From positions 62,001-126,000 of the forward strand of contig ADNK01002524.1 in the NCBI GenBank assembly GCA_000320545.1: 64,000 nucleotides of DNA. The letters are read 5' to 3'. The notes beneath the pieces were generated by a model, which worked only from the letters and a program-made list of their open reading frames with translations, searched no databases and was not told the origin of the DNA. Made by a program: the position numbers and the translations under genes. Below are positions 33,767-63,760 of the stretch, piece by piece. Positions within the stretch are counted from its first letter, which is position 1. Each line of letters starts with the position of its first letter. This stretch comes from Bigelowiella natans CCMP2755. Taxonomy: Eukaryota; Protista; Cercozoa.

Positions 33767-33800
<34 letters not shown>

Positions 33801-34490
33801 TGTTGTTCTAGTAGTATTGATTCATTCATCTTCATCATCGGTACCATTATTCCATTAGCCGTCTGGAGGACTACGAGTCATCGAATATATCAGGTTTCAG
33901 AGGTCACAACCGTTGGATATGGGAAGAAGGCCGCAAGGTAGGAGGGAGGCGTCGTATACACGTATACACATTCAACTCCAAACAGTATATTATGTTCTGT
34001 GTGCAATTACGAATAACGATGATATCTATATCATACACTCGCGCACACATACGCATACGCACACATAACATACATTTATGTTATATCATCTAACAAGCCC
34101 TATCCATCAGCATGAGTACTCCTCCCCCGCACGTCTCAATCTGAGGAGAAACAAAATGGTAGTGTAATCAATCACAACTCTCACGACTAATAATGGAGGC
34201 AAAAACTGGGCTGAAATACATCAGTAGAGAAACGAAGACTACGAGCACACTCAAGCGAACACCAAGCAACAAACAACAACCAGAGTGCCGTGTGGGCATA
34301 AATAACTGCCGTTCTCTATCATTGATACCTATAGACGCTGAATATCTGGAACCGAGACGACGGCTTTTGCTTTGATAGAATTGTTCTGACGAAAGATCCG
34401 CTCTTTGACCCCGACAAAGACACCGACGATAAAGAACGCCGCGTTCGTGAAATAGGCCCTCCTGAGAGTAAAGTGCAGATGATCCTCTAG
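32720..34490 (+). CDS. Secreted protein with a bacterial-type GH115 C-terminal/CBM-like beta-sandwich domain (about 6 exons)
   Basis: Signal peptide MLAISFALGVLLYLQPIEA; FVEEDGVLVIEAEHF; SGGGKFMCVFPD; MDYRIFITNPGIYYVYVRG..SNGIHVG; WIW; TLNIWNRDDGFCFDRIVLT; GPPES; stop TAG 34488-34490. Confidence 0.75.
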
Positions 34491-39179: not shown

Positions 39180-40983
39180 ATGACCTCCGAATCATCACCA
39201 TCTGCGCCTGTCAAGGCGTATGTGGTAAATTTGGTGTATGATAGCAAGCGTGTTAAGGCTCAGCTTTGGATAGGAATAACCCCCAACGAGCTACGGGATT
39301 TCATTAAAGGCAAGATATACATTATCAGTCATCGCATTTCCCTCAGAATTCAAAAATTTCTCCCATCTGTTACTTACGTCTCCCTTTTGTAGCGAGAGAT
39401 GTTTTTTCTTCCGAGTAGTAGCAGGGCGTGCGTCTCATGCCTCACTGATACAAACGTGCTTTTCTTTAGCAACCTTCGGCGTCGATGCCATTGGTTTTGA
39501 AACCGAGTACCACTTCATCCTGCCACCGGAAGTTCTTTGCCATTACATGCACTTATACCAAAACATGGATTTGAACATTCTCGTCAACGAGACGAATGAT
39601 AAAGAGCAACAGCAGCAGCAGCAGCCTTCGACCGAAGTAATACATCTAAAACATGTCAGTCTGGACGTCAACTGAGAACGTTTTCGAAATTGGATGCAAT
39701 AATAGATATATCGAATAATATGGTGCCTCTACCATGAGTATTTTTTAACCCTATCGTATCTCCCTCCTCTGAGGTCATCATCATTATAGCATAGATCTTT
39801 ATTTTTATCAAATGGATATGGTAGCGAGTAATCACGAACACACACACGCACACACGCATGCATTAAACAGGATGCGAAATCTCCCAGGGGCTCTGTTCTT
39901 TCACCTCAAATATACTCGTACGTGTGGCATTATAGCTGCAAGCACACACACATGAATTAAACATACATTTGTCGCATATTGTGATTTGAAAACGCGAAGT
40001 ACAGACGTACATGGACACATATCCATGATAATTTTTTATGTGAGAGACGACCGTTAGCATCGTTGCGGAAAACCATAAATGTTACATCATTATCATCATC
40101 ATCATCGCGCACCGGATGTAGCTAAATCGTTAAAGAAAACCTACACCGTAGAGTCTTCATGCCCCCTCCATGTTGTTTCGTGTTGAAGGAGTTGATGATA
40201 ACATCGTTACTATACTCGTCGTCAGATATGCGAGAATGATAGAGATGGAGAAGTTGCACACTCTTGTACTCCGAGCTTGCAGAGGTCGGTTCGGTAGCAG
40301 CAATGGCATCACCACCACCACTTTCAACCTCATACGATGATGTATTTCGGGCTTATCCCTTCTGCTGTTTTTCCTTCTGCTTCTTGCTAGATGGGGCATT
40401 GGATAAGACTAAGTTCCAGAGACTCATGACTACGCTGCTGCCGCGCGACACACCGAACAAGATCGCAGCCCCGTAATACTCGTAGTATGCATTCATTTTT
40501 GAAATCGGCTTCCTCCTCTTCGTCTATCTTCTTCTTCTTCTTCATCTCCCGACATCTTAGAGAGATGAAAATACTTGTCATTTATTGGATTTCACGGGGG
40601 GGGGGGATTGCCATATATGCTTGTGTGTGCGTGGGTGTTTGTGTGACGTACCCAAGAACACGATGCAGTACACTGCTAATAGCATGAATATTGACCTTTC
40701 CAAAATTCGACACAAGTTTTCCCTTCTTTGTTCTCTTCGCTGAGATTGTATTGTTTGCTGTTGCGGCTTGCTTTTGGTCCTCCCGTGCAGATACCTAGCT
40801 TCCTTGTCATCTCTGTTTGACTTGTTTGACACTAACGACGACGATGTCGTGGACCGGGTGAGTTACATACTTTTTACAGCCATCGATTTATGCTAGCAAT
40901 AGGGAAAATGATGACAACGAGGCTATTGTTGATTGGGATAAGTTCTAGGCTGTGCTACGGTTTTACTAGTGTATATATGTACG

Positions 40984-41022
<39 letters not shown>

Positions 41023-42147
41023 GGAGAGGGAGAATAATCGTCATTTGAAGATTGAATAGCGTCTATGCAAACGAGACTGCTGAGCTTGCTATTGTTGTGT
41101 TCTGAGTGGAATTGCAACGATTCGGTATGGTACATCATACGAATATGTCGTTTATTAGGACGAATTGCTCTCGGGACTAACACTACTATCCCAAGGATCA
41201 CTCAACGAACGGTTGCAGGTAATTTATCGCACATTTGCGTGTTGTGAGTGAATCTTTATGGGTTTATTTTAAGATGTTTCGGCGTCGCATTTTACATGAA
41301 TACGAAGCGTAAGGCTGCTACTAATTTTGCACAAATAATAATAATATTTATGTTTTAGGTGGTGTTCGCCCTAGTGGACAAGGAAGGAAACGGGTAGTAG
41401 TTAGTAGTAATCATGATGATGATAATGATGGTGGTGATGATGGTGATGGTGATGATGGTGATGGTGATGATGAGACGATCTGCGACAACAATCGTGCTAT
41501 AACCACCAGCTCTAATCTTACACAAATCATCATTGATTTCGCACGTCGTGTTCTCTCAATCGTTGTGAAATTCTGTCATTAGTTACATCTCCCCCAACGA
41601 GATGTGGAAGTTCTTCAAGCTGTCGATGCTCGTTCAAATGGCACTTTCCGATGAAACATCGGTATGGTAGATTGATTACTATATAATCCATCTAGCCAAT
41701 TATGTTTGTCTGCCAAGCGCCTAAATGTTAATATAAAATATAAAAAACAACAAGTTCTTCCCGCTACCCCCCCCCCCCCCTCCTTTTTCTCCCACTATCT
41801 TTTAATCGTTTCCTTTGAGCATAATTGACACCTCGCTTGGATGTGGGTGGTTAGAATCAATATTCAAAAAAAGTGCTGAGCGAAATTGCAGGTATTGCGC
41901 TTAATAGCATTCATTCAAAGCCAGGAGAAGAAGAGTGTCTACATTATCACCTACTGCTTTACACCCATCAACATTTTCAGCATTATTATGAATATCTCAC
42001 GTGCTGATTATTCCGATATGTATGACTGGATGAAATGCGAATACAATGAAGCTGTGTGCTTGATACGGCAAAAATCCTGATTGCTGGAGCATAAATATTG
42101 CTAACATTATTACCATATAATCCATTTTTACTAGCATCAACCATGTC

Positions 42148-42189
<42 letters not shown>

Positions 42190-43117
42190 CATACACACTC
42201 TCTGCATATGCCGCACAGACAACTCCCCATAGAAATACCCGATTTAGTGAAGATACATCTTGACACAATAGCGAGGATGATATTGACGGATATATCTCCT
42301 TAACATAGGAAACACAGCTGCAGAGGCGGTCGGGAAGATGTTTCGAGAGGCCTCTATGGCCAACAGGAGTAAAGGCATATCCTACGACGAATTCAAGGCA
42401 TATTGCCGTCGAAAACCGCACTTAATCTCCTGGATATCGGTTGGTTTGATGATTGATGAAGATAGTTAGGATGATGGATGATGATGACGGTGAGGATGAC
42501 GATGTACAGGCAGTGAGAATTGAGAAAATAAGTATTATCATCGTGTATTATCTTCCCAACCTAATTCTTGTCATCGCCTCTGCCTAAGCTGCTTCTAGGA
42601 TTTCTACTACTCTGCTGCCACTACTACAGCTACTACTACTGCTGACTGATCACGCACACCCTTCTCAATCCCCCCCCCCCCGCCTCTCTCTCAGATCTAC
42701 GACAAAATTCCCGAAGCAGAAAGTGGCCACCCTCTCCTGAAATCACCCGTGAAAAAGAAGAGAGGGGGGGGGGCTGAGAGGAGTAGATTCGAGATAGAAG
42801 ACGATGCCGGCGGAGTTGAGCAGCCTCCGTTCTCATCTTCTATTGAGCTCAAGACAAATGATGGAAAAAGCATCGTAGTCACCTCAAGGAAAGACAGAAT
42901 CGGCGAGTTTCAGAGCCTGCGACAAGCCCTCGGACCAGAGAAAACGCAGGAAATAGCAGATGACCTTCTTCGAGCCTTCCAAAGGTAGTAGAGAAGTAGT
43001 AGTAGTAGAGTAGTAGTAGTAGTAGAAAGATGGAATAAAAGAAGATGACAAAGGATTCGAGGGAGATGGGGTAATGGCGGTTATGTTTTGAGGGCATAAC
43101 TAGACGTTAAAGAAGAA

Positions 43118-43163
<46 letters not shown>

Positions 43164-43220
43164 GAATCGATGGTCTATGAACGGATGTCTACGCTGCTTT
43201 ACTTCCAATCTGACAATAAA

Positions 43221-43266
<46 letters not shown>

Positions 43267-43924
43267 TAATGTGTGGGTGTTTGTTCTGCAGGGAAGCAAC
43301 GTCTGGTTGTGTCAACCGCACCCAGTTCAAGCGAATCATGGCCAACCTCCTCTTCAGCTCGGGGGGGGCAAACGACTCCCAAAACGCCAAGATTGCGTAC
43401 CACTTTGACCGCATCTTCGACATGTTTGACGTATCCGGCACAGGGGTAGTAAGAAGCAACCAGCCTATTGTCATATCAGATATAACAGGCATGATAGCAA
43501 TATATCTTGAGTGTATTTTGCATTGTATATGTCGTGTCGTTTGTGACCTTTTACCTTTCTCGTGTTTGCCTTATGCCCCCTTTCCCCCTTCCCCCCCCCC
43601 CCCCCCTTTTTTTATTAAGGTTGTCGACACTGGAGAGTTCGTGACTGGTATGCTGATCTTCTCGAATGGAGGCAGAATGGCAAAGTAATAGCGACGATAT
43701 TTCTGTCCGCAACACACTGCACACGACACACACAACAGATATCGATGAGATGTACAAAGCATCGTGCCCACGCATACAGTTTCTAAGTATTATCACATTT
43801 AAAAAAAAGCACATTCTTCTCATCAACAGCAGCCGCACTCACGCCTACCTCGTTATGACGCAAACACAACATCGACAACAACAACAACGACAACAACAAC
43901 GACAACAACAACGGCAACAACAAC

Positions 43925-43958
<34 letters not shown>

Positions 43959-44471
43959 AACAACAACAACAACAACAACACCGACCAACAACGCAGGTTG
44001 CAGCTAGCCTTCGGCATGTTTGACATCGACAAAAACGGCTTCATCTCCAGGGACGAGATGTTCCGATTCATCGAGACCTTTCTCCGCGTGTGCGTCAATA
44101 TATCCGATCCATCATCAGGTTTGATGATTCAGGCACTACTTATCACGACAAAATCTCCATCATTGTGCTCTCCATCATTGTGCTATCTATCCACCCATAT
44201 CTATGATGATGGATGAATGAAGGCGAGAAACCTTCAAATGCGGTGTTGTTACTTAAACTAGCCAACGCCTCATTACTACTACAACTACTACTACTACTAC
44301 TACTACTACTACTGCATTGGTACTACCATCCATCCATCCATCCATTCAGGGGGCGGAGGAGGCGCATCTATTGGCAAGGGAAATCTTGCAGAGACTGTCA
44401 ACAAAATCGCCCTTGAATCAACGGACGAGTACTACCGAAACTACATTGATACGATTGCTACATAGAATATG

Positions 44472-44509
<38 letters not shown>

Positions 44510-45047
44510 TTATTTGTGTGTGTTTGTGTGTGTATTTATATGACACAATACGAATATGAAGTCTTTTTGGGATTTACGCGAGTCGCTGTGTACAAAATTC
44601 CTCGTTCTTTCCTCCACCTCACTACCCGTCTCTCTCCCTCCCAACCTTAGATTCTTTGAGCTTGCAGACGTAAACAACGACGACAACGTAAGAACGAAGG
44701 GCTAGCAGAGATATCCATCCATCCATCCATACTGCCATTCACCCCTCCTCCCTCCAAATCAGTTGTTCATCTCACAGTGTGGTGGTAGGGCAAAGTACAC
44801 CGACTGCAACTCCGCACGTTGTGTGTAGTAGTGTTGAAAACGACTTTTTCAGCATTAACCTCTTCTGCTTCTTCTTCTTCTTCTTCCTCTCCTTCTTCTC
44901 AGGTGTCTTGGACAGAATTCGTGCAGTTTTACAACAAATACGGACGACGGGTCTTATCGTTTCGATGTTGCTCTCGTCGTCATTGTTGTAGTTGTTGTTT
45001 TTGTTGTTGTTGTTGTTGTTGTTGGATAACGATAATGATATTTGATA

Positions 45048-45079
<32 letters not shown>

Positions 45080-46065
45080 AATGGTGATGACGATGATGGT
45101 ATTGCGAAGGATGTGATAATGCTAATGTCGTTGTTATTGCTGCTGCTGCTGGTGCTGATGATGATAGTGAGCATGGTGATAGCCATCATCGTTCTGCTAT
45201 CCCCTTACAAATCTGAAATAATGCGTTTGCAAGTTTGCTATAATCATCATCCTAATCACCGTCATCATAATCGTCATTCGCAAAGGTGAAATGGCTCTCG
45301 CTGCTCAATGAGATGATACCAATCGACAATGATTCTGTTGGTGAAGAAGTAGACCAAAAGACATCGGAGAACAGAAGACAGGTGTGCTGCCTACATTACA
45401 TCTAACTGCAACAAACTTTAATAAATGCTCAGTTATTCCAATGATCAATAAGCCAAGCGGCATATTTGATTTTTAATTATTTTATCCCCCCCCCCCCCCC
45501 CCCTTCTCCCCCTTCTTCACGCCTACCTCTTTTATACTCCTATTCATCTGTTCTGCAACCAATTCTTGCAGCAGAGTAATTTTTGCTTTGTTGATTCTGT
45601 ACTTATTTTATCTCCGTCCAAAAGCCTTCAAAGAAAGACGCAAAGGCAGTGGATGTCAAATTGAGCATTCCTCTGCCTGAGGGAGGAGTCATCGATATAC
45701 GCGACAACGACGTCACCAAATTCCGATTTCTTCGCACGGTGCGTAATCAGTGATAATGAAGATATAGATGGTTGGAGAATAGGAAACTATACTTCAGCAA
45801 ATAGACGCTCACTTAGCCATTAGTATGGTCCATAAATATCATCATTATGATCATGATCATCATCGTCATCATCATCGTTGTTCATCATTATCATCGTCAT
45901 CATCCACAGATATTCTCCAAGGTGGCACCTCTCCTGCAGCATCGTTTCTCAGAGTGTAAAGTCCTTGGAAGAACGGAGTTTATGCGTACGATGAAGTCTA
46001 TATTACCACGGTTAGAGCAAGGCCTTTACCTTTACCAGCAGCTTTTAGGCTAAATATACACACAA

Positions 46066-46125
<60 letters not shown>

Positions 46126-46380
46126 TATCCTGAAACTCTATAGCTCGATACCCAAACACATACCACTTGTGTTGTTATTGTTGTCCATGCAGAGAATACG
46201 TGTTCGTTCTTCTTATGTGTGTCTGTTTCTACTACTGTGATCAGTGACAGTCTATCACCAGCTCTCCGAAGCATTGTGGATCTGAGCCTCTATAACCTAT
46301 TCAACGCCTTTGACTACAACGCGGATGGCGTCATCGACGGCGAAGAGGTGAGGATTGTAGAGGCAAAGAAGAGAAAGAGG

Positions 46381-46418
<38 letters not shown>

Positions 46419-46738
46419 AACGACGAGGTTATTAGAAGTGTTAGATTTTCACTTCCGGCCTCTTTCCCATGACACTGAGTGTTTGTGGTTTTTTTTCTTC
46501 TCCTTCTTCTTGTTCTTCTTCTTCTTCGTCTATATAGTTTATGCGAGGAATGGTTCTCCTCCAGGCTTCTTCCAAAGAGCAAACACTTCAATTGATATTT
46601 GATATGGTTGGCTTGCCTGTTACCCCTTTGTCTTGTTATGGTGTAGTGGGCATTACGACGATGACCTCTGCTCTCTTTCTCTTTCTTTTCTCACTCTATC
46701 TACTTTCTCTCTCTCTCTCTCTCTGTCTCTCTCTGTGT

Positions 46739-46779
<41 letters not shown>

Positions 46780-47085
46780 TGTGATTGCCCTCTAGTCACT
46801 CAATTTGTCCTATTGCATTCCTTATTGTTCAAATATCTGCTTGCTGCCGTCGTCGTTGTTGTTCTCGATGCTGCTGCTGCTTATTGCCACAGATCGATGC
46901 GGATCGAAACGGAAAGATTTCGATGGAGGAGATGTGTGATTTCTTCTCCTCCTTCCTGCTGATGACGTGTGCAATTTGCGAGGACGCTGCAGATCTCCCT
47001 GCGGAGTACCTACAAGATGTAGTCTTCAAAGCGGCACATCAGGTGTGGATTTCCTCTTTTTCCACTTAGCTGACAGAGACTGTCG

Positions 47086-47152
<67 letters not shown>

Positions 47153-47555
47153 CTATGTATATACTATTATTCTCATGTAGAGATTTGGCGGAACTATACA
47201 CAGTGATATCAATTATTCCTCACCATACCGCAAATGTTTGTGAGGATGCACATGTCTACGTATGGGACAATTGCACTTGTTTCTATCAAGCCAAAATGAC
47301 TCTTTTTCTTCGCTAAAAATCAAATACTTTGTCAATATAATCGGCATATATCCTCTCACATTCTCACCGTTTTCATTGCTACTACTATCACTACCCTCTT
47401 TTGCTGCCGTGGTGTGTGGTCTTAGGTTACGGAGAGTTTCTTCTACATCGCAGATACCAACGAAGATGGCTGGATATCTTGGTAGTGATAACAACATGAT
47501 ACTTTACTTTCTCTGCTCTCTCTCTCTCTCTCTCTCTCTTCCTCTCTCTCCTCCA

Positions 47556-47597
<42 letters not shown>

Positions 47598-48284
47598 CGC
47601 ATACGCACAGGCATGAGTTTGTGACGGTGTATGAGAACGACCGACATCTGGTGCCTTGGCTGCAGCTCTTGGATGTAATAATAGTACTATACGAGAGATA
47701 CTTAGCCAATCCTACGAGGACGAGAGGACGCAGTGCCCAGAAAATTTTGTTTATTTAAGCGAAATATTTCTACTCTCTTTTGTCCAGATTGGTGTTGATG
47801 CCGTAGTTGAGAAGATATCGGACAACACTAACAAATGCAATTAAAACGACACTAACAAATGCAATTAAACCGATAGATTGCTGATGAAGAATCGCTCCAA
47901 GAAGATGCGATTGAGAAAGGCGATGACGACGCTGGCCGTGATGATGATAATGAGGAAAATGAAGACAGCGGCTACGACGATGAAGATGCTGGATTATTGC
48001 AGCAGGGCGGACCTATTTCTAACACATCACTGGTAATAAAACGTCTCTTTTATTCTCACTCTTTTCTTCTGCGTCTATAGCCTTCTCACTCAAGAACCGT
48101 GTCGGTTGCATTGCATTGGGTTGATTGAGAATGCTGCTATCTTCCTCCTTATGTTCCTTCCCGTCCTTCTTTGTACCAATCCCGGTTTCTTCAGGTGCTG
48201 TTGACTGATGACGTAGCTTGCCTCTCCTCCCTTGCCCCTTTGTTTCGTGATATTCCACCCGACAAAATCCTTGAAGCTTTCAGG

Positions 48285-48322
<38 letters not shown>

Positions 48323-48634
48323 AGACTACTATGCAGCAGCTAGTATTACATCGACTAAAAAGCAAATGACGCCGTATTTGCAACTACAAAGCACCATCAT
48401 CTCCGAAAACGGCAGTCATTAGTAGTTGGTACAGATCAGGGCGACATTCACGAGCGCGGTTTATGCGTATTCTCTATATTTTCGGAAAGTACCAACCCCT
48501 CGTCTCCTCCCTACCCCCCCCCCATTTCTTCACGTACTCAGGAGAGAAGCAGGTAAAGGGTACTTGGATCGTGTGTCTTTCTCCAGTGTGATGGCGGAGC
48601 TCTTCTACAAGGTTGAAAATGTCTTTGATAACAG

Positions 48635-48676
<42 letters not shown>

Positions 48677-49521
48677 GCCATACGTACATTAGTTCATCTT
48701 GTATAATATAAGTAAATATGGTGTGCGTGTTGGCACTCTCGTATCGTCGATATCACTCGTTGTTGTTGTTTTTGTTCCACTTGGATATCTATGCGCTACC
48801 CCCTCTTTCTCCACACCTAGCTTCTTGCAGAGGACGAGACGCTGAGTCGTCTCTTCCGAAATCTATTCAACCTCTTCGATCAGGTATGCACGCACGTGCG
48901 CGCGCACGCGCGCGTGTGTGTGTGTGTGTGTGTGGTTGTGTATGTGGGTATGTGTGTGCATATGTGTGTGTGCTTGTGTGCAGAGCAATTTAAATTGTAT
49001 TCAAAGAATGCACGGAGCTCTATGCTACCATCGATGTTACGTTCGCGCACCTCATGGGCTAAGCCAGAAACACGCAAAACCTGTATTGTACAGACGGACA
49101 GTGGAAGAATATCAGCGCGGGAGTTCCTAACGGGGATGTGGCTTCTAACGCTTCCTTCGGTGAGAAGTCACGCTGCTACTAGCATATAACAATGGATACC
49201 AGCTTACCGAAACCCTCCTCGTAGATGTGTATTTGGACGAAGCGTTGGTTAGATGAAATTACAGAGAAGGAAGAAGAAATATATGAACGAAAACATTTAG
49301 CATGTAATAGCCTAGAATATTGCGTATGAGACGATGTATGATCGGTCTATTTATCTTCAAATTTTGGTCGTATCTTCTCGAATTGATGGATGCGCTGTTC
49401 TTTTTCTTGTTTGGTAGGTTGGAGATAAGCTGAAACTAGTCTATATATTCTCCAACGAGAACGAGGAGGAAAATGACCTCGAGCCGATGATTCGTCCAAT
49501 GGTACTTTTAGAAATTAGTTG

Positions 49522-49557
<36 letters not shown>

Positions 49558-51725
49558 ATAGCTTGTGTGAAAGGCCATTGTTGTGATGTTCTTCTTCTAT
49601 ATGTATTTGCTTCGTAAGGAAGAATCTACGTGCCTCATGATGTCGCATAAACAATTAGCTTCACTGAAATATGCATGATAAGTCACTATTTATAGTAGTC
49701 TGCTGCTGCTGAAGGCCTTTGTTTCCTCCTAGCCAAAAATAATTCCGATGTATTGTGGTAACACTGTTACAGGCCGTTACGCGTTTTGTGGTGTGCTTAA
49801 TGCGGGTTGCATTCGGAGGGCGATTGCTCTCACACCAGGAGACAAAACAGCTCAAAGACGGCATCGTATGTGTCACTTAATTTGCATTGACCTGCATGAA
49901 TTGTGTGGTTTAGATGGCGCATTCGAGAAGAAGCAAACAAACTAGCGACATGGTGTATCTGCGTGTGGTTGTGTTTGTGTGTGTGCGTGTGTGTTTGTCT
50001 AGTATATCCACGGTTTTGATATTTTGAACATCGATTCGCCTTGTTATCGGTGCTGTCTCCCCTTTCACACGTTGCACCGTTCTGATCCCCCCTTCGCTGT
50101 TTGCGCCGTCATCGTTTGCCCTCCGCAACCCAAATGCTCATCAGGTGAGTGAGGCGCAGGAGATCACGGAGTGCCTCTACGAAGCCCGTGACACTGCGCA
50201 ATGCGGAAAGTTGCGCTATGTAGACTTTGCCGAAGCTTTTGTGCGCCACCCGTTTGCAAAGGTTGAGAATAACGATAAATTGATGATTATGGAGATAGTT
50301 ATGATAATGTAGATGGTGATGATGATAGTGACGATGATGATAGTTGCGGGGTGTTAAGAGTATCAGATACGTGAAATATTGGAGCAAACACGTACAATCA
50401 GCGTTATGGTCTATGCGTCAAACAACTCACCACCACCTCCTCAGGTCTTGCATATATTCGCATCACCGCACACCAAAGTGCCTCCCACGCCTTCGTCCAC
50501 TGCAAGGATGCAAAGGAGTGATGAGCATGGAATAAGACAACCAGGATATGAAACTAAGGTATAGTATATTCAGACGTTTTCTGCACATTCGTCTGCACGC
50601 GCATTCACATGGAATTGCGAAGTTGTGGAGTAACCCGCCACGCCGAAACGCCCGGTGAAAAAGAAGAGTTTGGGCATGGAATTTGATTGTTTTGGCACAT
50701 CCAATGTTGTGTCGCTGCCGCCATCTGACCGATTATTTCCTTCCAAAACAAAGAATCAATACTACGACGAGAAGGGCAAGAAAGGCAAACTGGTCCTTGA
50801 GCGTGGAGATGGAGTACGATTTCGTCTCAAGCCGCAAGATGTGCAGGGATTGGAATTCCTAGTGCAAAACCTGGGAGGGCTCACATTCACGCAACTTATG
50901 AACACGTACAATTTTCATCACGATTATAGTGTCTCCTTCCCCTTTTCTCTCTCTCTCTCTCTCCCTCTCTCTCCCTCTCTCTCTCTTTGAGTGTGTGTGT
51001 GGGTGGGTGGGGGTGTTGTGTGGGAACTATATCATCGCTGCAGCACACTGATAGCAGCACCGTATGGCTACCTCACCAAAGATTCGTCCATTTTGCCAAA
51101 AACGGAGCTCTAAACAAGGAGCAATTCAACGCTGCCATAGACGCTCTAGTGCCTGCAGCTGCTATCTCCCAAGTAGAAGGCGGCGATGACAACGAGGGCG
51201 CAGCTGGGGAGGAGGGCGATTACGAGGATAGAGAAAGGTGATGGCAATTGAGTTGCAAGCGAAAATATGATCATCATTTCTAGCTTCGTTACTATCACCA
51301 ATGCTATCTCGCCACCACCGTTATCATCACCATCATCATTATCGCCGTCGTCGGTCACTTTTCTCTATTCAGGCAAAGCAAATCCCGAACAGATGCCTGG
51401 ATGCTGCGGTTTGTGCTTCATCGCCTTTTTGAGGTAGAAATGGCTGGGAGGGGGGGCGGGTGTAGAATGGAAGTCATGTCGCATGTTACCCGGCCCCCAC
51501 CGTTTGCGAACGTTTAACACCGCAAATCGGAAGTGGAAATAACTATGAAATATGTTTCAAATGCGTGATAATAATAATAATCATTTGGGTTTTAAAATTT
51601 TTCCATTTTTGGTGGGAGCGGGGGGGGGGGGGATAGTCCGAGCATCAGTCTGCAACTGGATGTTGTTGAAGGATGATTATATCTGCGTTTTCTTTCTACT
51701 TCTACTTTCCCCTCTCCCTGTGTAC

Positions 51726-51762
<37 letters not shown>

Positions 51763-52106
51763 TGTATTTGTGTGTGCGCTTTTTTTTTAGGTCTTTGATT
51801 CTAACAATGACGGAGCTGTTGATTGCTTCGAGTTTCTCTCTGGTTTGAAATCAAATAACACATACGAAATGACACCTTTTAAGCTCCTCAGCAGACGCTG
51901 TACTCTCGCCATTATTCCTTTAATCCACGTCGGAATGACTCTTTTTTTGTCTGTTTGTTTGGTATTTGGCGCTGCGGCAATTTGCCTGGGTTTCGGTAAC
52001 AACGCAGGAATCAACTTTCTCTTGAATTCCGACATCAAGCAAAAACTAACAGTGGGCTTTATCATGGTAGACTCCAACGGAGACGGGTAAATGAGCATAT
52101 TTATAG

Positions 52107-52140
<34 letters not shown>

Positions 52141-53798
52141 GTATTGTGCATGACATTGACGCGTACACTTTGAACAAAAAGGTACATTGAGATGGAGGAG
52201 CTCTTCAAGTTCTTCATTTCGTTCTATTCTCTGGTAGCCGCAATATCGTCAGAGGCGCGTGCATTGAGCACGCAGGATCTTCGCAATCTAGTTGTGGACG
52301 CTTCCCAGGTGCCGCCGCAACTGCCCATTACCATTGCCCGAAACTCGATGCACTGATGGCAGAGACTGCCATCATCATCATCATCACCACCACCACCACC
52401 ACCACCACCAGCCAATGCAATGAAATGCGTGTTTTAATTGCGACGAATATTCAGGCCAGTGCTAGAGCTCTTTTTGCGGCTGCGGACTCCAAAAGAAGGT
52501 TCGACCCCCACGCGCACATGGCATGATGGTGATGGTCAGCACCAACTAGCTGCACTGCATACTCACCGTCTTGGTTTTGTGCGTATTTGGGAACTCTTGT
52601 CCCACTTTGCACTGTGCTGTGCGACTGCCAATCGAGGGTATCAGTACCTTTTGATGACTGCTCTACATCATCATCATCATCATCGCCATTGTCTCGTTTG
52701 CGGTCATTTTCGTGATATCATGCCATACCTGGTTTCAGGGGCAAGATCTCCTTGGCGGAGTTCGTAAAGGCTTACGTGAGCGACAATGAGCTTGTTCCGT
52801 GGGTTCGCTTGTTTGTCAAACTTGGCGCTGAAGAGACCAGGGCAGGGGGGGGGGGAGCAAAGGTTGTACTGGCACCTACACATCATGTGGATATGAAAGC
52901 TAATGTCTGTGTTGATGCTAGGAATACAACGAAATCAAGTTAGAAAGATATATATTATATATATATATAACACGGTATGGACGTCATAGTATGCATGAGG
53001 CCTCTATGAAAGAATGGAGAGAGCACGGTTTTCGCGTAAGTACATTTCTCTACAACACGTTGAGTATGATATAATTTTCAGAGAAATCAAGACGCCAGAG
53101 GTGGTTCTCCCACAATCAAGCTAGCAGCTGGACTTCCCACCCCAAGAGTCTCGATGAAGAAAACCGCACGTTTCAACGACGATGTGGACGAGGAGAAGCA
53201 GCACGATGATGTAGAGGCAATCCCTGTTGGGCCGCACTCATCGAGTAAGAAATAGACATTTGGAATATGAGAATGCGACTGATATAATGACCGTGTTGAT
53301 ATTGCTGTGCCTGTGGTGTAGCCTAGCTGTGTGTAATATCGACTTTAACTTGCTGTTGTGAGCTGATCTCAAAACAAATTTCGTAACATCTTTTCTCTCT
53401 CTCAACCTCTTTCTCTCTCCCGCTCTCTTTATATATATATGTATATATATTTATTTATTTATTTATTGTTTATAATTTCGATGGTTTTTCTTAGCGCGAT
53501 TTGTGAATTCTCCGGAAGAAGAAGAATCTGTCCTTCTTCAGATTGCCATTTCGAACGATGGAAAATACCTGTACGACAACCACGCGCACAGCTTCACTAC
53601 ACATTATGGAACTATTATGCCAAGCCGATGTTCCCTCGTATCTTAACTTTCTAAAAGCAGATGATGATAATGACGATAATGATGATGATGTGTTGATGAT
53701 GGTGGCAATATCGATGATGTCTTCGAGTTGCGATGTATACCGCACATCTGCCAGTTCACGAATAACTTTTCCTCTGGCAGATTTTGCACGTACATTTG

Positions 53799-53834
<36 letters not shown>

Positions 53835-54855
53835 ATTCACCGCAGGTATCTTACTGACGACGACATGGAAAAGCTGTACTACATCAGAAACCAACTGAAA
53901 GGATATTCAGCCAAGGATCTGCTCAATATATTTGATATGGCAGCTGATGCAGGGAGCCTTGACCATCGGGTGGATATGCTACTGAATCAAGCTGTTGTAT
54001 TGTATGATGTATAGTTGCGGAAGATATGCAAGCGAATGTACATGTTTGGAGGTTGGTGAGAGCAGCCTGCACACGCATTCTGAGAGATGCATTCTGAATA
54101 ACAACATTGACTGGAAGTCAGGAACACTTGATTGTTATTCACTCGTTGTGCTGCTGCTGCTGCTACTTCTTAGGGATTCATAAGCTGCCTGAGGTCACTC
54201 ATTCCTGGTGAAGACCTTGATGAGGATGAAAAGTGAGTGGGAAGTAGCACCTTTCCTCGTAGCGCGGAGCACTGATCATTAATGCATATGAGGATGATGA
54301 CAATGATGATGATGGTGGTGGTAGTCACACACATGCCAAGTTCCCCAAATTTGGTTATTGCTCTTAGACGATAGCGTTAAGTTTACCATCGCGCTAGCTT
54401 GAGCGAATACAAAGCAAAAGTCGCGTTGTCCATAGTCCTGACACGCCTTTTGCCTTCAACACCATCGTTATCGTTAATAGGCATCATCTGGAACAGCATC
54501 TGCAAGCACTCTTCTACGTCTTTGACCGCGATCTTGTAATTGATACTCTCCCCGCCATCAGGGATTCACTATCATCCGCAGTAGCAATGTTACTTATCAA
54601 ACTCATGTTTTGCACCATGATGGCTAAGGCCTCGTCTATATGCTTACACAGCTGATTGGTGATATGATGCGACGGGTGATTGTTGTGTTGTTGGGTGTAC
54701 CTGTTCCAGGACGGACTGATATCTGTGCATGAGTTTCTTTGCGGTTTGTACGTATTCTGCGAGGAGCCACCAGCGAAGAAGCTCGCGGTGAGTGGCATTT
54801 ACTTTTCCGCTTAACCCAACGCAAGAACATCACAGCACGTGATGTTCTAAATGGC

Positions 54856-54894
<39 letters not shown>

Positions 54895-57800
54895 CCCCCG
54901 TGCAACTTTCTCCTCTCCCCCTACCCCCCCCTGCTCTCTAGGTATTGTTCTCACTGGTTGATATGGACGAGGATGATATGATTGATGCTGACGAGCTTCG
55001 GTTGTTTTATCGTTCAATTCTTGCTGCTCTCGTCGGGCTCTCCTCCTGGGCGCACTCGGTAGTAAGTGCAAGGAAATAATAGCTTGATTGTCAATATGCA
55101 CGAGAGCCTTTAGTTAGTGGCGTTTAGATGGGTGAAAGTTCGTCTCTCGAGTATCTTTCGAGATGAATGCGATATGCCAACGACGTATCTCGGAGAGTCC
55201 GTTTTGCTCACCTACTCTCTCCCCTGCTGACGCCGGTCAGGTCCCTGTCTCGCACCTTTCGCAGCTGCTCTGGAACGCCGCAGCGATAAAGACTGCAGAG
55301 TTCTTCGATTGCGCCGGAGCGGCAATGGAAGAGGAGGACGCCGTTAGCTTCACCACGTTTTGCCAGATTCTTACCAAATTCCCCCAAACAGCTCCTTGGC
55401 TATCAATTCCTGACGATGAAGACCAGGCGGTGGGTTGCATGTTTCTCCCGTGCGTGCGATATGCATGGTGGCGCGTATGATGTTCAATCCATTGCTGAGT
55501 TCCTTCTCTGTCCCCATCCTCTCATCTCACGTGCAGAACGACGATGAGGAGAGCAATACAGTGGTGATATCTCCAAGAAAAGCGGCGCGAATGCGCCAAA
55601 GCGAGAGACCGAGGGTATATGTATATATTTGCACTTTTGCCGTTGATTCAGTTTGTCCTTACGTAATGAGAGTACCAGCCAATGGTAATTGAATTTATAG
55701 TTTATAAAGTGTAGAGGGGGTGGAGAGAGGGGAAAAGAGGGAGGGATGGTAATATGTTGCGTTTTGTAATCTTTATTCTTTGTTTTCTCCTTCATTTTCT
55801 TCGTCATCTCCCACCCCGCCCCGCCTCATTCTTGACCGTATCACCCATCAGATGCTGGCCTTGACAGCACAGGATGTAGCGGCAATCGAAGCTATAGCAC
55901 AAAGCACCCAGTTCAGGTAGGAAATCTAGACAAAATTATAAAGACCGTGAGGACGATATTGACTAGATAAAAACACGCCATGTATTTACTACCCTTTCTA
56001 CAACGTCTCTCCTGCAATAACCTTTCGAATACAGACGGAGCAGCACCTTGCATCTTCCTCACCGTTTTTTGGTATTATTTTTGTTTTGGTTTATTTCCCT
56101 CCCCCCCGCATTCCGTTGATTCCCCCTTGTACAGGGATATGGATCTTAAGATGATGCTTCGAGCCTTCGCTACTGTCGCAAAAACGACCGAGGCAGGCAC
56201 TGAGGTCAACAAGGCTGGATTTACCAAGATTTGTCGCGATCTTGTACCAGGACTCCGAAGCGGTACTAAGTAGCTCTGTTTTAGTAGTAATAGTAGTAGC
56301 AGTAGAAGCAGTAGTAGTGTGAGCATAGATGTCGGTATAGTTGCGAGGGCATGTGGAGTTGGCGCGTGTGCGTGTGTTTGACGGATTCTCCGCTGTATAT
56401 TTATACTTTGGTCTATTGAAGATGACGAAGAGGGCTTGAGGTCTTTTGCAGAGCTGCTGTTTCTCCTATTAGATAGAAATCAGGTTGTCATGTGAGAATA
56501 GAGAGAAATCGTGTACTCCTCCTCCTCCTCCTTAGCACGATCAATCTTCCCCCGAGCACATTTATATGATTTTCACGATTCAATGCGAAGCTACCAGATG
56601 TATTTGCCGTTTTTTGTCCACGCCGAGAAGTAAACACCACGATTGTGTTATTCTTTACAGAATGGGCGAATCGACGTCACAGAGCTTACTGTTGGCCTTT
56701 CGATTTTCCTCAAAGGTCAGTCGGCATTAGCAAAGCTCATCTATGTTTTAACGGGCTGCACTCACCACCACAGCATTCAGTCGATTGTGAGTAGTACATT
56801 AGTTTCGCGTCGGTATGGCAAAAGGAAGTTTCATTCACATGATGCCCTCATGGCTCTAATTAACAGGAAATGCGACGCAGAGGCTGCGGCTGGCGTTTGA
56901 TTTGTGCGATTCGAATGCTGACGGCAACGTTGATTGGAGCGAAATGTGAGTGCGTGCGTGTGTGCGTGAGGATATGATGATGATGACGACGATGATGGTG
57001 GAGATGAAGAGGTTTTGAGATCGTGAGGTGCTGAGACGTCTGATAGCAAGACGGAGAGGAGCATCAGATATCCTTGCTTACTGCACTCGTATGGCGGTCG
57101 CGTGCTGCTTCTACAACACAGCATGATCATACATCAAGGCCTAATTATAGCTGTTAGATACAGTGTGCTTCTTCGCTAATGCTGACTCATCCACCATCCT
57201 CGACAGGTATAAAGTGCAATCCTCTAGTCTTTCCGTATTGCTCGCATTTGCCGCGGAGTCACAGTCGCTCTCCAACGCCATTCCAAAGCTTCAAGCCCTC
57301 GTTAAGATAAGGGCGAAGGAAGCTACTGACGCTGTTTTCGAGCTAGGAGACACGGTCAGAATCCACTTGGGCATATATCGTGTTTGTAGATGAGCGTGTG
57401 TGTTTATGTTTGTGTGTGCGTGCTTTGGTACGTGGCCCTTCAAAGAGCTTAGAGCCGCCATTCTTTGCTACTCAAGAATTGGGTCGGAGACTGATTGAAA
57501 ATTGGTGTGTTATGATAGAACAACGATGGGCTCCTGTCCTTCGATGAATTCGCAGCTCTCTACGCAAATCACCCGGTAGGTTTTTACCAAAGAAAGCATT
57601 GTGATGCGTGCTTGCAGGGATGGTGACATCGTCAGTCGTGGGAATTGTTTGATATCTCGGTTGTGTGAGTGAGTGTGAGTGTGTGCGTGTGTGTGTGTGT
57701 ATGTGTGAGTGTGTGTGGTGTACGAAGTCGGCATTAACGGCAGATCGTTTTGAAAGTGGATTTTGGTGTTTCGATGTTCATCCTTCTGCATCTCTTTCCT

Positions 57801-58148
57801 CTCACGATGATGAATGAGACGAATAATTCCTATCTGCGTCACCTTTATAAAGGGTCTCTTACCATGGATGCACATCTACAACCACTCGGCATCATCTTCA
57901 AGCCCCTCTGAGCTCAAAGAGGCTGAAGATACCACAGCAAACAGCCCGAGGGTGTGAAACGAAGAAATTGGAGAATTATAATAACTTGATGTATACTTTT
58001 GGGGGAAAAAAAAACAGAGGAAGAGAATATAGATTGTTGTGTTTTCGTGGAGAAGAGGCGTATTCTGATGAAAGCTCTATGAAATGTATTTCAAAGGGGA
58101 AAGGGAACGTTTTGACTAACGTTTTGACTGCGAAATTACTTATTTCAC

Positions 58149-58188
<40 letters not shown>

Positions 58189-58835
58189 TATATATATATA
58201 TATATGTATATGAGCAGGTTATGCTACGAGATTCAGACGCCTTTGGGCCTCTGCCAAACAATGGAGAATCTTCCGATGAGGAGGAGGACGACGAAGAAAA
58301 GCGTAAAGGTAACACCAACGTCCTGATGAGGCGCATATACTCACAACACTAGTGATGATGACTCCCCTCCTCGAGGAAGTAGGATTTGCTGTATTGCGTG
58401 CAATTTTTGTGTAGCGAATTTAACTCCTGAAACGAAGCAAATGCACTAGCATCTTGGGTTGTGAAAGTTGCCTTTTTGCGTGTCTTTATCCACCGAAAGC
58501 ATCGGCCATCGGCACCTCTGTCGCAGCATCTCCCTTTTTTTGACTCAGCCGTCTTGTATTGCGCACTGTTTCCATTATCTTAGGATATATTACAATGCGG
58601 AAGTCCAATCGGTACAGAGCACCAGCTAACAATGACGAATCTGTGATGCATAAATACTACTATTATGCAGCACAGCTAACGATGACGAACATGAGTCGCA
58701 TGAAGATCACGCGGCGCATACGAATTATTCACGAAATTCCTGATTGCCTTTTAGTACCTCACGTGTACGAACGTGATATTCTCAAATTTTTCTGTTATCG
58801 ATTCATTATGTTTATTCAAATTTTTGTCCCCAATC

Positions 58836-58877
<42 letters not shown>

Positions 58878-60576
58878 CTTCTACCTCTACCTCGTAGAGA
58901 GCAGCTTCGATTCATCAAAAAATCCAGCGGGCTGAGCAAACTATCACCAGAGACGATTTACGACGAGTTAAAGACAATAGCGACTGCAAAGGAAGGAGAT
59001 TCCAACTATACTGTAACAAGAAAAGCCTTTCTAGACTGGATTGTTGGGAACTTCTCAGAGGGTTGTTGATCAATACATCTTAATAAATAGTATACTATAA
59101 AGTACGTGACAAATGAGGACGACGAGGAAAAACTGTGGGTAGGGAGAGAAGGGGGGGGGTTACTTTACGTCACTCGATGCGTCATATGGAAATCAAATGA
59201 GTTTGGTATAAACATGATATTAATGAGCCAAGATAAAAGCTAGCATCTGAGTAGAGTTTGGCCGTACATACTTTATCAGAAAAGCACAAGATCGATTGGG
59301 AAACCCCTCCCCGCGAGGTAATATGTGTCTCGACTTCATCGCTCTATAGTTTACTTGCCATTCCTGGAGGCCTTTTTTTTCCAACCTACCTTTTGAAAAA
59401 CACGGGATTTGCTGTTTTTCGGCCCTAACAAGAAATTAAACTGTGCGGCCTTGGAGACGCGTCCATTTGGGGGTGCTTTGAATGCGCTCGGGGAATGAAA
59501 GAAGGCATCGCTTAAGGGCGCCACTCTAATATCTTTTGATCTTGTTTATGTTCGAAAGAAGCAAGGAGACGGTATGCGCACCGGAGACGGGGCTATGTCC
59601 CCCCGCAGCTCGGAGAGAGCAGTAAAGATGCACGTGTTAAGTTTCTTTGGCATGATCTTCGATTCTCTCGACTATGCGAGCTACCAGCGGGTTGGTCCTG
59701 ATGTGTAGTAGTCCTCCGAGTGTTAGATAGAATGAAATGGTGAAATTATCCCTCGTGCTGCTATGAAGTAGTAGAAGTAGAAGTAGAAGTAGCAGTAGTA
59801 GTAGTATTAGGCCTGAAATCCATCTATCGAAAGAGTAGCAAGATTTATTTTTATTGTGTACACGCGCCCATACAACTTGCCATCTCCTAGCGCATAATGC
59901 ATGACGATGGCGGTTCTTCGTTAGCAGCGGTGGAGAGAATACCCATGTATTGTCGCTGGCATGATATCCTGACTGGAACACCATCTCAATAGAGCATCAA
60001 GCACCGTTGACTTCGTTTGATTTGTAGGTTCCAACGGCTGAGCTTGCTTTTATGCTCTGTGGGTTTTGCGGAGGTAGTAAAAGAGTGCGAGGCCAATGTT
60101 TTGTGTGTGTGTGTGTGTGTGTGGAAGAGAGAGAGAGAGAGTGAGAGAGAGCGAGAGTGAGAGAGACGGGGGGGGGGGGGGGGATTATATTATCGTCGGA
60201 TGACACTGATACGTACATAAATGTGCATATGATGTTCTTACATAATTGCGAGCAAGTTCCGTGGCACTATTAAGAATGGGACTTCTTAAAGTCGATCTTC
60301 AATTATTTGCAGCTTCCTGATCTTTGTTTACAAATATGCGTAGGAAACCTGACAAGCAAGCTGAAAGTCGCATTTCACATGTTTGATGAGGACAGGTGGT
60401 TATAGTAGCCGTGACTCCAAAATAAGTGCAGTATTTGCTGTAAAAGAAAAGCATTTCCAAAAATTTAGATTTGCTGATTTTTTGCCGCATTTATATGGCG
60501 GTTGCAAAGCTAGTTGTTGTTTTGCAGACCGATAACCACTGAGTGATCACAATTTTGTATTATTCAAATTTTAAGA

Positions 60577-60616
<40 letters not shown>

Positions 60617-60649
60617 TGCATGCTTACACAAAAGACGTATATATAACGA

Positions 60650-60690
<41 letters not shown>

Positions 60691-61444
60691 TATAATATGA
60701 GATTATGTATTTCTGGTTTCAAATCTAAAAGCATATTGGTTGAAATTGCTACTATTGCCCCTGCGGGACATATCTATGATAGAGATGAACGAATATCGAA
60801 GATGGAGATGTTCTTCTTCCTGCGCACACTGATCGCCTTTGTCCTCACCTCCACGGCGCGAAGCAAGGATCATATGGTGAAGCTAGAGGAAACATGTAAT
60901 ACACTCGACACGATCTAACACGTTAGCACAACAGCAGCATCAGCAGCATCAGCAGCAGCAGCAGCCGAAGGAGCAAAAGCAAAATGGCAAATCTCTACTT
61001 CTAGAACGCGCCAACAACGATATGAATTCATCCTTTCTATCTTTTCACCAGGCAATAAATTAGCGCAAGAGGCAACGGTGCGGATCTTTGACGTCGCGGA
61101 CTCGAATAACGATGGCTCTCTAAACTTTGACGAGTTCTACGAGCTTTGCTTGAAGTGAGATGGGGGAGGGCATACAAGGGAAAAACAAGGAATTACCAGA
61201 AGCTTTGTATTGATGTCTTCGATGTTGGGCTCTCTTTCTTCTCCCTCTTTCTCTTTAGATTTCCTTTATTTGTCTCATGTTCTTATTCCCGCAAACACCC
61301 ACACATACAAGCTCGCGCATGTAGATAGAGAGAAGTCTCATGAGAGGAGGTGAGGGGGAATCGTGAAAACTGAGAGAATTTTGCTTGTTTTCTTGCTTAC
61401 AGACATCCAGAATTATGCCCCTGGATCCAGGTTAGAAAAGCGTG

Positions 61445-61484
<40 letters not shown>

Positions 61485-62226
61485 TAGATATATTTATACA
61501 TACATGAATGCATTAGTTTGTATCATTTCGGCAATTTGCCGAAGGTGAGCGAATGGCGTCAGCTCGTAGCGAGCTGCCTGCAATCGTGCACACCAGAAAG
61601 AGAGGCAGATCATGCACACACGGGGACCAATCTAGTCCGTTGTGGCGCGAGGAGATCTGATATAGTCCAGAAAATTAGGAGCCTTTGTAGATGTAAATAT
61701 GTTTTGCATGGAATGAATCTTGCTGCAAGCTTTGCTCTGTCGTGGCATCATTCAATTGCCGCTGTGGATTCATTAAGGTGTTCCAAGTCTTCGATGAGGA
61801 TGATGACGACGATGAAGATGAGGAGGAGGAGGGAGAGGGAGGCGATAACCTTCAAGGCAATGACGCGGAGAGGCTCGGAGCGGCCAGCAGCAGCAACGTC
61901 GATGGGGTTGAAGACGATGGTGAGATGAAGGAGGGCACGAGCTTTGATCCAATGTCCACGTACTCGCCACGTCATGTTGTAGCCAATCTCAAACGCGCGA
62001 AAAGCCTCTTCAGCCTCATACCGACGAGACATCTCCTGCACATATGCAAGTCAAACAGAGGGGCTTGGAGGTAGGAAGAGAGAAAGAGAGGGGGGGGGGA
62101 GGAGGGGGAGAGCGGATTTACACTTCAAACGTTTGCTTTCTCGCACGAACTGGGGGGGGTATAGAGGTGTTCTGAAACTGGTTTTCTTTTGTTCGGTATA
62201 GTGATGATGTGTTTGTGAATACGATA

Positions 62227-62260
<34 letters not shown>

Positions 62261-63077
62261 ATGATATACTACGTTTAATGCATGCTTGGATGAGCACTTG
62301 AGCCAACACTTTCTCCTAAAATCCTGCGAACATCCTTCGGTGTTGCTGTTATGCCTAGATTGCATCAATTCCAAGAGCTGTTCACAACGTTGATTCAATC
62401 GTCGCTAAAGCAAGTTGTGCTTTCGAAGGAGGAGAGGAACGGTAGATCTGTTAGCACGATAGTATAATATTGATGCTTGTTTTGTTTGGAAGGGGTAATG
62501 CCACTTCATTTTTTCTCTGAAACGAATAGAACAACGATATATAGTTATTTGAGTATTGTCGGTCGTTATACTGCGCGAATCGTGGAGATTTGGTTCTTCC
62601 TCTTCTGTGCTCTCCCTACTGTTTATTCTTCATCTACGCAATGATGATGCGCATTGATGTCCCTGAACGATATACTTCGCAAAGGGCTCGCACACGACTT
62701 GGAAATGCTGTTCCACATCTTCGATGCGGACGGAAACGAGGAAGTTGATACGTGGGAGTTTGTTTCTGGTACTTGTGAGAGAGGGAGGGAGAGAGAGAGA
62801 GGATAGAGATATGTGATCGCACATGATGTTTTGCTTTCAAATTCGGAGCACTCAAATTTGCAGCCGTTGTCTCTCCTCATTGTGTTTAGCCTACGCTCCA
62901 ATCAATTTAAAAAGCTGCGTGATAGATGTACCCGTCACGTGTACTAATTGTCCTCAACTCCTTTGCGATTAGGCATCTTCCTCCTATTGGACGGCACTGC
63001 ACGCCAAAAGCTTGATTTTGCCTTTGGGTTGTTCGACAAGGAAGGCTCGGGGGTAGCACCGGACATCACACACACAT

Positions 63078-63115
<38 letters not shown>

Positions 63116-63286
63116 ACACCTTATTTTCTGTTTCGGGTTCTCGAATATGGTCCTGCTACACATACATATCATGTACTACTACCCACATGCAGCGTAATAC
63201 AAAAATCGCAACTGCATTGTGTTAAAGATACACTGTACATACACACACACACACACACACCTAGACATGCACACACAAACGCATAT

Positions 63287-63318
<32 letters not shown>

Positions 63319-63760
63319 GTACATATTTAATTTAATGTGCTATAATATGATCGTTTTCCTTAGTTAATTTCCCGAGTCGAGTTGTTCACTCTATTTATCG
63401 CATTTGTCCGGGTCTTGCTGCTGTATTCTCTGAGTGAGAAGATTTCATCAAAACCGACCCCGGCGGTGAAAAGCCGCATTGAAGAAATCGCTTACCTCCA
63501 AGCTCGAAAGGCTGTTGATGCAATTTTTGACAAAATCGGAAAATCCGACGAAGAGGCTCTGCCTCACAGTGACGTCATGTAATATTTGAACAATTAGTTC
63601 GTTGCGCCTAAGTTAGAGAGTAAACGATCGATTGCGCATTGGTATATAATTATGTGTTTTTTTTGGTTTTCACGTTTAAAGGACTGTCGCTATGGATTGT
63701 GCTCCGTGGCTCGGAATGCTGGACCTCTTCTCGGATGCAGAAATGGTCGAATCTGTTTGA
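39180..63760 (+). CDS. Giant multi-EF-hand protein: small N-terminal domain plus nine tandem NCS/recoverin/calcineurin-B-like four-EF-hand modules (roughly 75-85 exons, estimated 2,500-3,000 aa)
   Basis: Recurring unit: degenerate EF1 (G.l....F), LF..FD.xxDG.vD..EF..Gl, KL..AF...D.xxxG.Is..Em..f, EF4, terminal (P)W. Canonical loops include DIDKNGFISRDE (44023), DYNADGVIDGEE (46312), DADRNGKISMEE (46896), DMDEDDMIDADE (54960), DSNADGNVDWSE (56908), DSNNDGSLNFDE (61099), DADGNEEVDTWE (62723). Last exon TVAMDCAPWLGMLDLF...ESV* ends at 63760. Confidence 0.85.
43867..43980. repeat. Long imperfect (CAA)n microsatellite in intron
   Basis: CAA/CGA array just upstream of the acceptor at about 43996; explains the spurious poly-Q and poly-V ORFs. 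Confidence 0.9.

Follow-up and report, generated by a model that had tools for sequence, protein, structure and literature searches.

Nine tandem NCS-like four-EF-hand modules at a locus of the chlorarachniophyte Bigelowiella natans

Calcium sensors of the NCS, calcineurin-B and CBL types are textbook single-domain switches. Calcineurin B, the CBL proteins and CHP each consist of one four-EF-hand module, lack a catalytic domain and grip a target helix within a groove. Most of them carry a lipid anchor, and all four sites of calcineurin B are functional. A first EF hand (EF1) that is dead, a long connector between the third and fourth EF hands (EF3 and EF4) and terminal helices make up what we take to be the architecture of the recoverin/NCS, calcineurin-B and CBL group. 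Here we describe a locus of Bigelowiella natans CCMP2755 at which modules of this kind follow one another nine times on the positive strand, between positions 39180 and 63760 of a 64,000-nucleotide stretch of contig ADNK01002524.1 (the window, to which all positions refer). An earlier note on this DNA had read the array as a single giant protein of nine NCS/calcineurin-B-like modules and had recognized no characterized protein with such an architecture. In the literature that we searched, we likewise found neither this B. natans locus nor any tandem arrangement of NCS-like modules described, and the nine-module layout is apparently new.

Nine homologous modules in one open spliced frame

The array occupies 24.6 kb of intron-rich eukaryotic DNA of approximately 42 to 47% G+C and consists of nine homologous, diverged four-EF-hand modules. 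When the spliced modules were aligned with each other, they matched end to end at 19 to 31% pairwise identity. The C-terminal motifs by which the earlier note had marked the module ends were all recovered in positive-strand frames, at 42422, 45286, 47648, 50244, 52791, 55388, 57856, 61413 and 63698. A strict EF-loop pattern, unbroken by introns, occurred eight times in the six frames of the 64-kb window, always on the positive strand and between 44022 and 62723, and not once in the next 10 kb downstream. The flanks are free of modules for at least 1.8 kb upstream and at least 10 kb downstream. Translations of single exons were matched by the Pfam families EF-hand_1, EF-hand_5, EF-hand_6 and EF-hand_7, with E values down to 8e-6. 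The alignment and the Pfam matches support the proposal of nine NCS/calcineurin-B-like modules of four EF hands each, and no catalytic, membrane or coiled-coil part was found in the array protein.

Each module presents its parts in the same order: a linker, a beta-hairpin, a helix leading into EF1, then EF2 to EF4 and a C-terminal helix. The hairpin is clear in modules 1, 2, 3, 5 and 6 and weak in modules 4, 7, 8 and 9, and the helix behind it is the N-terminal, EF1-entering helix of the sensor fold rather than a separate element, so that the beta/alpha cap previously described for every module holds only in part. EF1 is short, lacks ligands and is degenerate in all nine modules. EF2 and EF3 are spaced 36 residues apart, the EF3-EF4 connector is long (57 to 64 residues between loop starts), and EF2 to EF4 stand at conserved columns of the nine-module alignment. 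The C-terminal helix carries a conserved Pro-Trp-(Leu/Ile/Met/Val), which is replaced by Ser-Trp in module 1, Lys-Trp in module 2 and Pro-Phe in module 4. Strictly canonical loops fill 17 of the 36 EF positions in the spliced modules, and the alignment adds approximately 4 near-canonical loops; module 4 has none that is canonical. Some 17 to 21 of the 27 loops other than EF1 look able to bind Ca2+. The linkers between modules are acidic or basic Pro/Ser-rich segments. Modules share some of their intron positions; seven of them, for instance, have a phase-0 intron within the EF2 loop. Such sharing fits the duplication of a multi-exon unit.

The spliced model joins 74 exons into a coding sequence of 7,326 nt, whose product has 2,441 amino acids (274 kDa, pI 4.7). 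Its frame runs from the ATG at 39180 to the TGA at 63758-60 without an internal stop, through GT-AG introns and one GC-AG intron; the exons thus do chain into one frame over 24.6 kb, as had been claimed. The median exon measures 82 nt and the median intron 235 nt, the averages for the B. natans genome being 159 nt and 184 nt, respectively (PMC12730881). The model was built with a home-made dynamic-programming exon-chaining script that used codon log-odds, splice-site weight matrices and GT-AG introns. It was constrained by 69 coding anchors, which were read from three-frame translations by means of the homology between modules, and doubtful joins were mended by listing all frame-compatible donor/acceptor pairs. 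Single exons served as database queries, and joined exons were used for frame checks and for the module-to-module alignment. Models chained without anchors were dropped because they were over-fragmented (220 exons) or skipped exons, as was a multi-gene chaining mode whose outcome hung on an arbitrary penalty.

Module 1 (39180..42439; 10 exons, 320 amino acids) starts at the ATG at 39180 and ends in Ser-Trp-Ile-Ser at 42439. Its cap and four EF positions lie from 40152 onward, behind an extra N-terminus of approximately 100 amino acids (exons 39180-39309 and 39470-39636) that is considered below. Module 2 (42695..45381; 8 exons, 297 amino acids) opens with a P-V-K-K-K linker and a beta-hairpin cap, has no ATG in its first exon and combines a degenerate EF1 with canonical EF2, EF3 and EF4. 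Module 3 (45634..47674; 7 exons, 216 amino acids) has canonical EF2 to EF4 and no in-frame ATG, and the 252-nt gap upstream of it contains no ATG mini-exon. Module 4 (47877..50261; 8 exons, 249 amino acids) also lacks an ATG, and its four EF loops are degenerate without exception; an acidic linker exon of 52 codons (47877-48032) starts exactly at an AG and ends at GTAATA. Module 5 (50754..52862; 8 exons, 265 amino acids) shows its beta-hairpin cap clearly; its EF2 and EF3 are canonical and its EF4 nearly so. EF2 and EF3 are again canonical in module 6 (53082..55429; 8 exons, 295 amino acids including the linker exon 53082-53244), where EF4 is degenerate, and EF2 to EF4 are canonical in module 7 (55537..57951; 9 exons, 257 amino acids including the linker exon 55537-55614). 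Module 8 (58218..61430; 10 exons, 265 amino acids) has an acidic linker and canonical EF3 and EF4. The last module (module 9, 61778..63760; 6 exons, 278 amino acids) has a canonical EF2 and ends at the TGA of the model; its first exon (61778-62070) opens with 49 acidic codons and contains no ATG.

Linkage between the modules

Several features of the junctions bear on whether the modules belong to one polypeptide. All eight introns between modules are in phase 0, compared with 30 of the 65 internal introns (p of approximately 0.002 if phases are independent). The junction gaps (107 to 492 nt) are of the same size as internal introns and are far shorter than the mean intergenic spacer of approximately 1.5 kb, which we computed from the published B. 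natans totals of 32.9 Mb of intergenic DNA and 21,708 genes (PMC12730881). Scored with matrices trained on internal introns only, the junction donors fell between the 82nd and 99th percentiles of decoy GT sites and the junction acceptors between the 59th and 100th percentiles of decoy AG sites. No ATG stands ahead of the conserved parts of modules 2, 3, 4 and 9, and an ATG-initiated mini-exon with a usable donor was sought in the gaps before modules 3, 4, 8 and 9 without success. Since neither module 3 nor module 4 has a codon at which it could start, modules 2 to 4 at least are, as far as their reading frames tell, one polypeptide, and on the same grounds modules 3 and 4 are excluded as independent single genes. 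The missing starts of these two modules and the eight phase-0 junction introns together make it very likely that multi-module polypeptides are made from the locus.

These observations also leave very little probability for nine separate sensor genes of one module each, arrayed in tandem. Such an array would account for the size and exon number of the modules, which match the B. natans gene average of 2.8 kb and 8.8 exons (PMC12730881), and possible ATGs do occur in modules 5 to 8. However, neither the first exons nor the upstream gaps offer modules 3 and 4 a start codon, modules 4 and 9 begin with acidic exons that lie between an AG and a GT and contain no ATG, and the intron-sized gaps are all bridged by phase-0 links.

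We consider the chances to be evenly balanced that the whole array is one transcription unit encoding a single nine-module protein of approximately 2,441 amino acids, and a number of observations weigh against it. Some of these concern two junctions. At the junction between modules 1 and 2 (J1, 42440..42694), the chain donor after 42439 (TCG/gttggt) is weak, with 4.1 bits and a rank at the 19th percentile of internal donors, and is joined to the acceptor before 42695. If the donor at 42439 is not used, the frame ends at the TAG at 42467-9. One base past this stop, the ATG at 42471 opens 14 acidic codons that end at a donor (GCA/gtgaga, 42512), which is in phase with acceptor 42695, the strongest acceptor of the locus. 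The junction between modules 4 and 5 (J4, 50262..50753) is the weakest link. Its chain donor after 50261 (AAG/gttgag; acceptor before 50754) scores 3.7 bits, at the 14th percentile of internal donors, and without it the frame ends at the TAG at 50310; the ATG at 50676 is in frame with module 5 and could start it. In-frame stops between modules had been named in the earlier note as grounds for rejecting a single protein: the spliced chain contains none, but J1 and J4 run into a stop unless the weaker donors are used.

The sequence before module 5 points in the same direction. A relic-like P-V-K-K-K stretch at 50649-68 is severed from the upstream exons by the TAA at 50631-3. An identical run of 14 nt, encoding V-K-K-K, is found in the linker of module 2 (42749-42762) and ahead of the ATG of module 5 (50655-50668), in modules that are only 22% identical. 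The ATG at 50676 and the severed linker relic suggest a real gene boundary, at which the linker may have been left behind by a split. Usable ATGs also lie near the start of each of modules 5 to 8, whereas the ATG of module 9 lies only downstream of its acidic linker, and chance alone can produce in-frame GT-AG links.

To the alternative that the locus encodes two or three multi-module proteins in place of one we give a probability short of even. Module 1 or modules 1 to 4 would then end at the stop at 42467 or 50310, and new proteins would start at the ATG at 42471 (modules 2 to 4) and/or at the ATG at 50676 (modules 5 to 9); separate promoters, an alternative choice of 5' splice sites or the secondary split of an older single gene could each lie behind such a division. 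The in-frame stops lie only 9 and 16 codons past the motifs of modules 1 and 4, ATGs are available behind them, no other junction has a chain donor as weak as those of J1 and J4, and the relic before module 5 is cut off. On the other hand, a single base separates the stop from the ATG at J1, which leaves no room for a promoter, the strong acceptor at 42695 needs an upstream donor, the gap at J4 is just 364 nt, and in-frame phase-0 links are available at both junctions.

A (GAY)n acid run accompanies each of the two stops (42467-42512 at J1 and 50279-50350 at J4), in a frame shifted by one base from that of the upstream module. The B. natans assembly was made from Sanger plus 454 reads (PMC12730881), and the shifted runs may reflect an assembly error of 1 nt, a genuine lesion or a switch between alternative 5' splice sites. 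Programmed frameshifting at J1 and J4 was considered and dropped, as no slippery site is evident. Further (GAY)n "poly-Asp" microsatellites lie within introns of the array (41415-41500, 45035-45100, 53650-53700, 54263-54320 and 56970-57023), which are also rich in (TA)n, (CA)n and (CT)n runs. Because (GAY)n runs sit in introns, acid-looking open frames are not evidence of coding, and the acidic linkers were rejected as proof of it.

The gene model itself adds to the points against a single chain. It was guided by homology and not by RNA, and a few small connector exons are doubtful. The uncertain parts are exons 41925-42000 and 58584-58611, and weak donors end exons 48542-48620 (1.0 bit) and 49773-49865 (2.7 bits). 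The first intron reads best as GC-AG (AAAG/gcaaga at 39310), a join that is uncertain. Introns with a length that is a multiple of three number 33 of 72, above expectation. Three of these (43446-43619, 48884-49093 and 51843-52007) are free of stops, and their retention would keep the frame; each splits an EF loop or a helix, which indicates that they are real introns.

A second copy of the locus was sought in the genome as a check on the frame at J1; none was found, and the locus is unique. In the collections searched, none of the tested exons was covered by a transcript, an annotated protein or a homologue, which likewise counts against one large protein. The linker-plus-cap exon of module 2, searched exhaustively against 1.84 billion representative proteins, returned no self match; it matched only two poly-ubiquitin-like repeat proteins and gave one low-complexity match. 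Word-index protein searches, limited to a length window of 0.55 to 1.75 times the query, were blank for exons 42650-42985 and 55136-55477 and for 43122-43685, the last of these queries being overrun by low-complexity words. No relatives of exon 42695-42982 turned up in a metagenome scan.

The lack of any expression or annotation trace in these collections would also be expected of a silent or decaying array, that is, a pseudogene cluster or a gene unexpressed in culture, in which the breaks at J1 and J4 are real lesions. The shifted acid runs at the two junctions and the loss of every canonical loop in module 4 agree with this explanation, which we nevertheless consider improbable. Approximately 70 homologous exon pieces are open, with compatible phases and normal splice signals, and the blank searches were bounded by length windows and low-complexity words. 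In addition, the hydrophobic cores and the 17 canonical loops have been kept at a pairwise identity of only 19 to 31%, a pattern that points to long purifying selection.

A possible origin and role of the array

We propose that the locus may have arisen as a multi-exon cassette, bounded in phase 0 and encoding a recoverin/NCS-like sensor, was duplicated repeatedly in frame. Each module would act as a single NCS or calcineurin-B-type sensor does, with Ca2+ at EF2 to EF4 moving the C-terminal Pro-Trp-Leu helix and opening a hydrophobic groove. A chain of such modules could be a multivalent Ca2+-switched adaptor with nine different grooves or a high-capacity Ca2+ buffer, and splicing at the weaker donors of J1 and J4, or termination at the stops that follow, may determine how many modules a chain contains. 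We infer the single mRNA, the binding of Ca2+ and the function, be it multivalent sensor, scaffold or buffer, from these features. In its fullest form the proposal is a chain of approximately 2,440 residues with nine recoverin-like modules and 36 EF positions (about 20 of them live), in which splicing at J1 and J4 chooses one, four or nine modules; this we put forward tentatively, with a probability short of even.

If the proposal is true, the locus would supply a flagellate alga with a tunable multivalent Ca2+ decoder or buffer, either as nine target grooves on one scaffold or as a cooperative Ca2+ buffer of very high capacity. A nine-copy chain would show that the sensor fold lends itself to serial use, like beads on a string, and, if it is one chain, it would be the longest EF-hand array known to us. 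It would also be a clean case of gene growth by phase-0 exon-cassette duplication in an intron-rich protist. A contractile filament or a role in reticulopodia, as suggested earlier, finds nothing in the sequence to support it, and the organism is a flagellate chlorarachniophyte. As context only, B. natans has been reported in a review to be without orthologues of LC4 and DC3, the flagellar Ca2+ sensors of Chlamydomonas (PMC4415241).

Upstream of the array, the positive strand carries another gene with coding-like exons (33008-34487), 4.7 kb away, and a short coding-like stretch (37133-37363), 1.8 kb away.

Comparison with known calcium sensors and repeat proteins

The modules belong to the EF-hand superfamily, as indicated by the Pfam matches on their exons and by the 17 strict loops. 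Their placement within it is less direct. Searches of the PDB with exons and exon profiles returned NCS-1 and hippocalcin beside calmodulin, secretagogin and an amoebal CaBP, all scoring alike, and did not tell the NCS proteins from other EF-hand families; with the EF3-exon profile, NCS-1, hippocalcin and neurocalcin aligned at their own EF3 (residues 104-135), over the longest stretch. Iterated hidden Markov model searches with exon segments converged poorly, the EF loops being split by introns. 

Parts of modules 1 and 2 also bear a weak likeness to ubiquitin-like proteins. The two poly-ubiquitin-like repeat proteins recovered in the exhaustive search (P0001 and P0002) align with the beta-hairpin and helix of module 2 at 27 to 29% identity (E = 5.5e-9 and 6.8e-6), the module 2 cap aligning with the first half of their ubiquitin-like repeats. 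In contrast to the array, these proteins have no EF hands, and the helix of the array runs straight into EF1. The N-terminal 100 or so amino acids of module 1 read like a ubiquitin-like beta-grasp, although exons 39180-39308, 39472-39636 and 40152-40283 gave no match to the Pfam ubiquitin family.

Among the closest known systems are the NCS/recoverin proteins (NCS-1, hippocalcin, neurocalcin and KChIP), which have a core of 190 to 200 amino acids with four EF positions, a non-binding EF1, a spacing of 36 residues between EF2 and EF3, a long EF3-EF4 linker and N-terminal and C-terminal helices. The array modules, as read from their translations, share this plan in a compact unit of approximately 190 amino acids whose EF1 appears unable to bind Ca2+. 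They differ in being nine in tandem where the known proteins have one, and several of them carry an extra beta-hairpin in front. The Cys-Pro-x-Gly of the EF1 loop is absent from all nine modules in the alignment. There is no N-terminal myristoylation consensus (Met-Gly-x-x-x-Ser), module 1 starting with Met-Thr-Ser-Glu and modules 2 to 9 being internal or starting otherwise. Because these two hallmarks are lacking, the modules are, by sequence, NCS-like and not NCS members; the kinship proposed in the earlier note thus holds for the architecture and the dead EF1 and stops short of membership.

With calcineurin B, CBL and CHP, the array presumably has in common its type of EF3 region, G-x(4)-KL-x(2)-AF-x(2)-D-x-D-x-(N/D)-G-x-I-S-x(2)-E-(M/L). 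Unlike in these sensors, EF1 is dead in every module of the array, and no kinase or phosphatase partner is evident. Internal duplication of EF hands in a protein without an enzymatic domain has precedents in calbindin D28k, calretinin and secretagogin, with 6 EF hands, and in sea-urchin LpS1, with 8. In those proteins, however, the 6 to 8 hands are packed into one or two globular domains, whereas the B. natans array extends to as many as 36 positions, set out in nine separate four-hand modules with flexible linkers.

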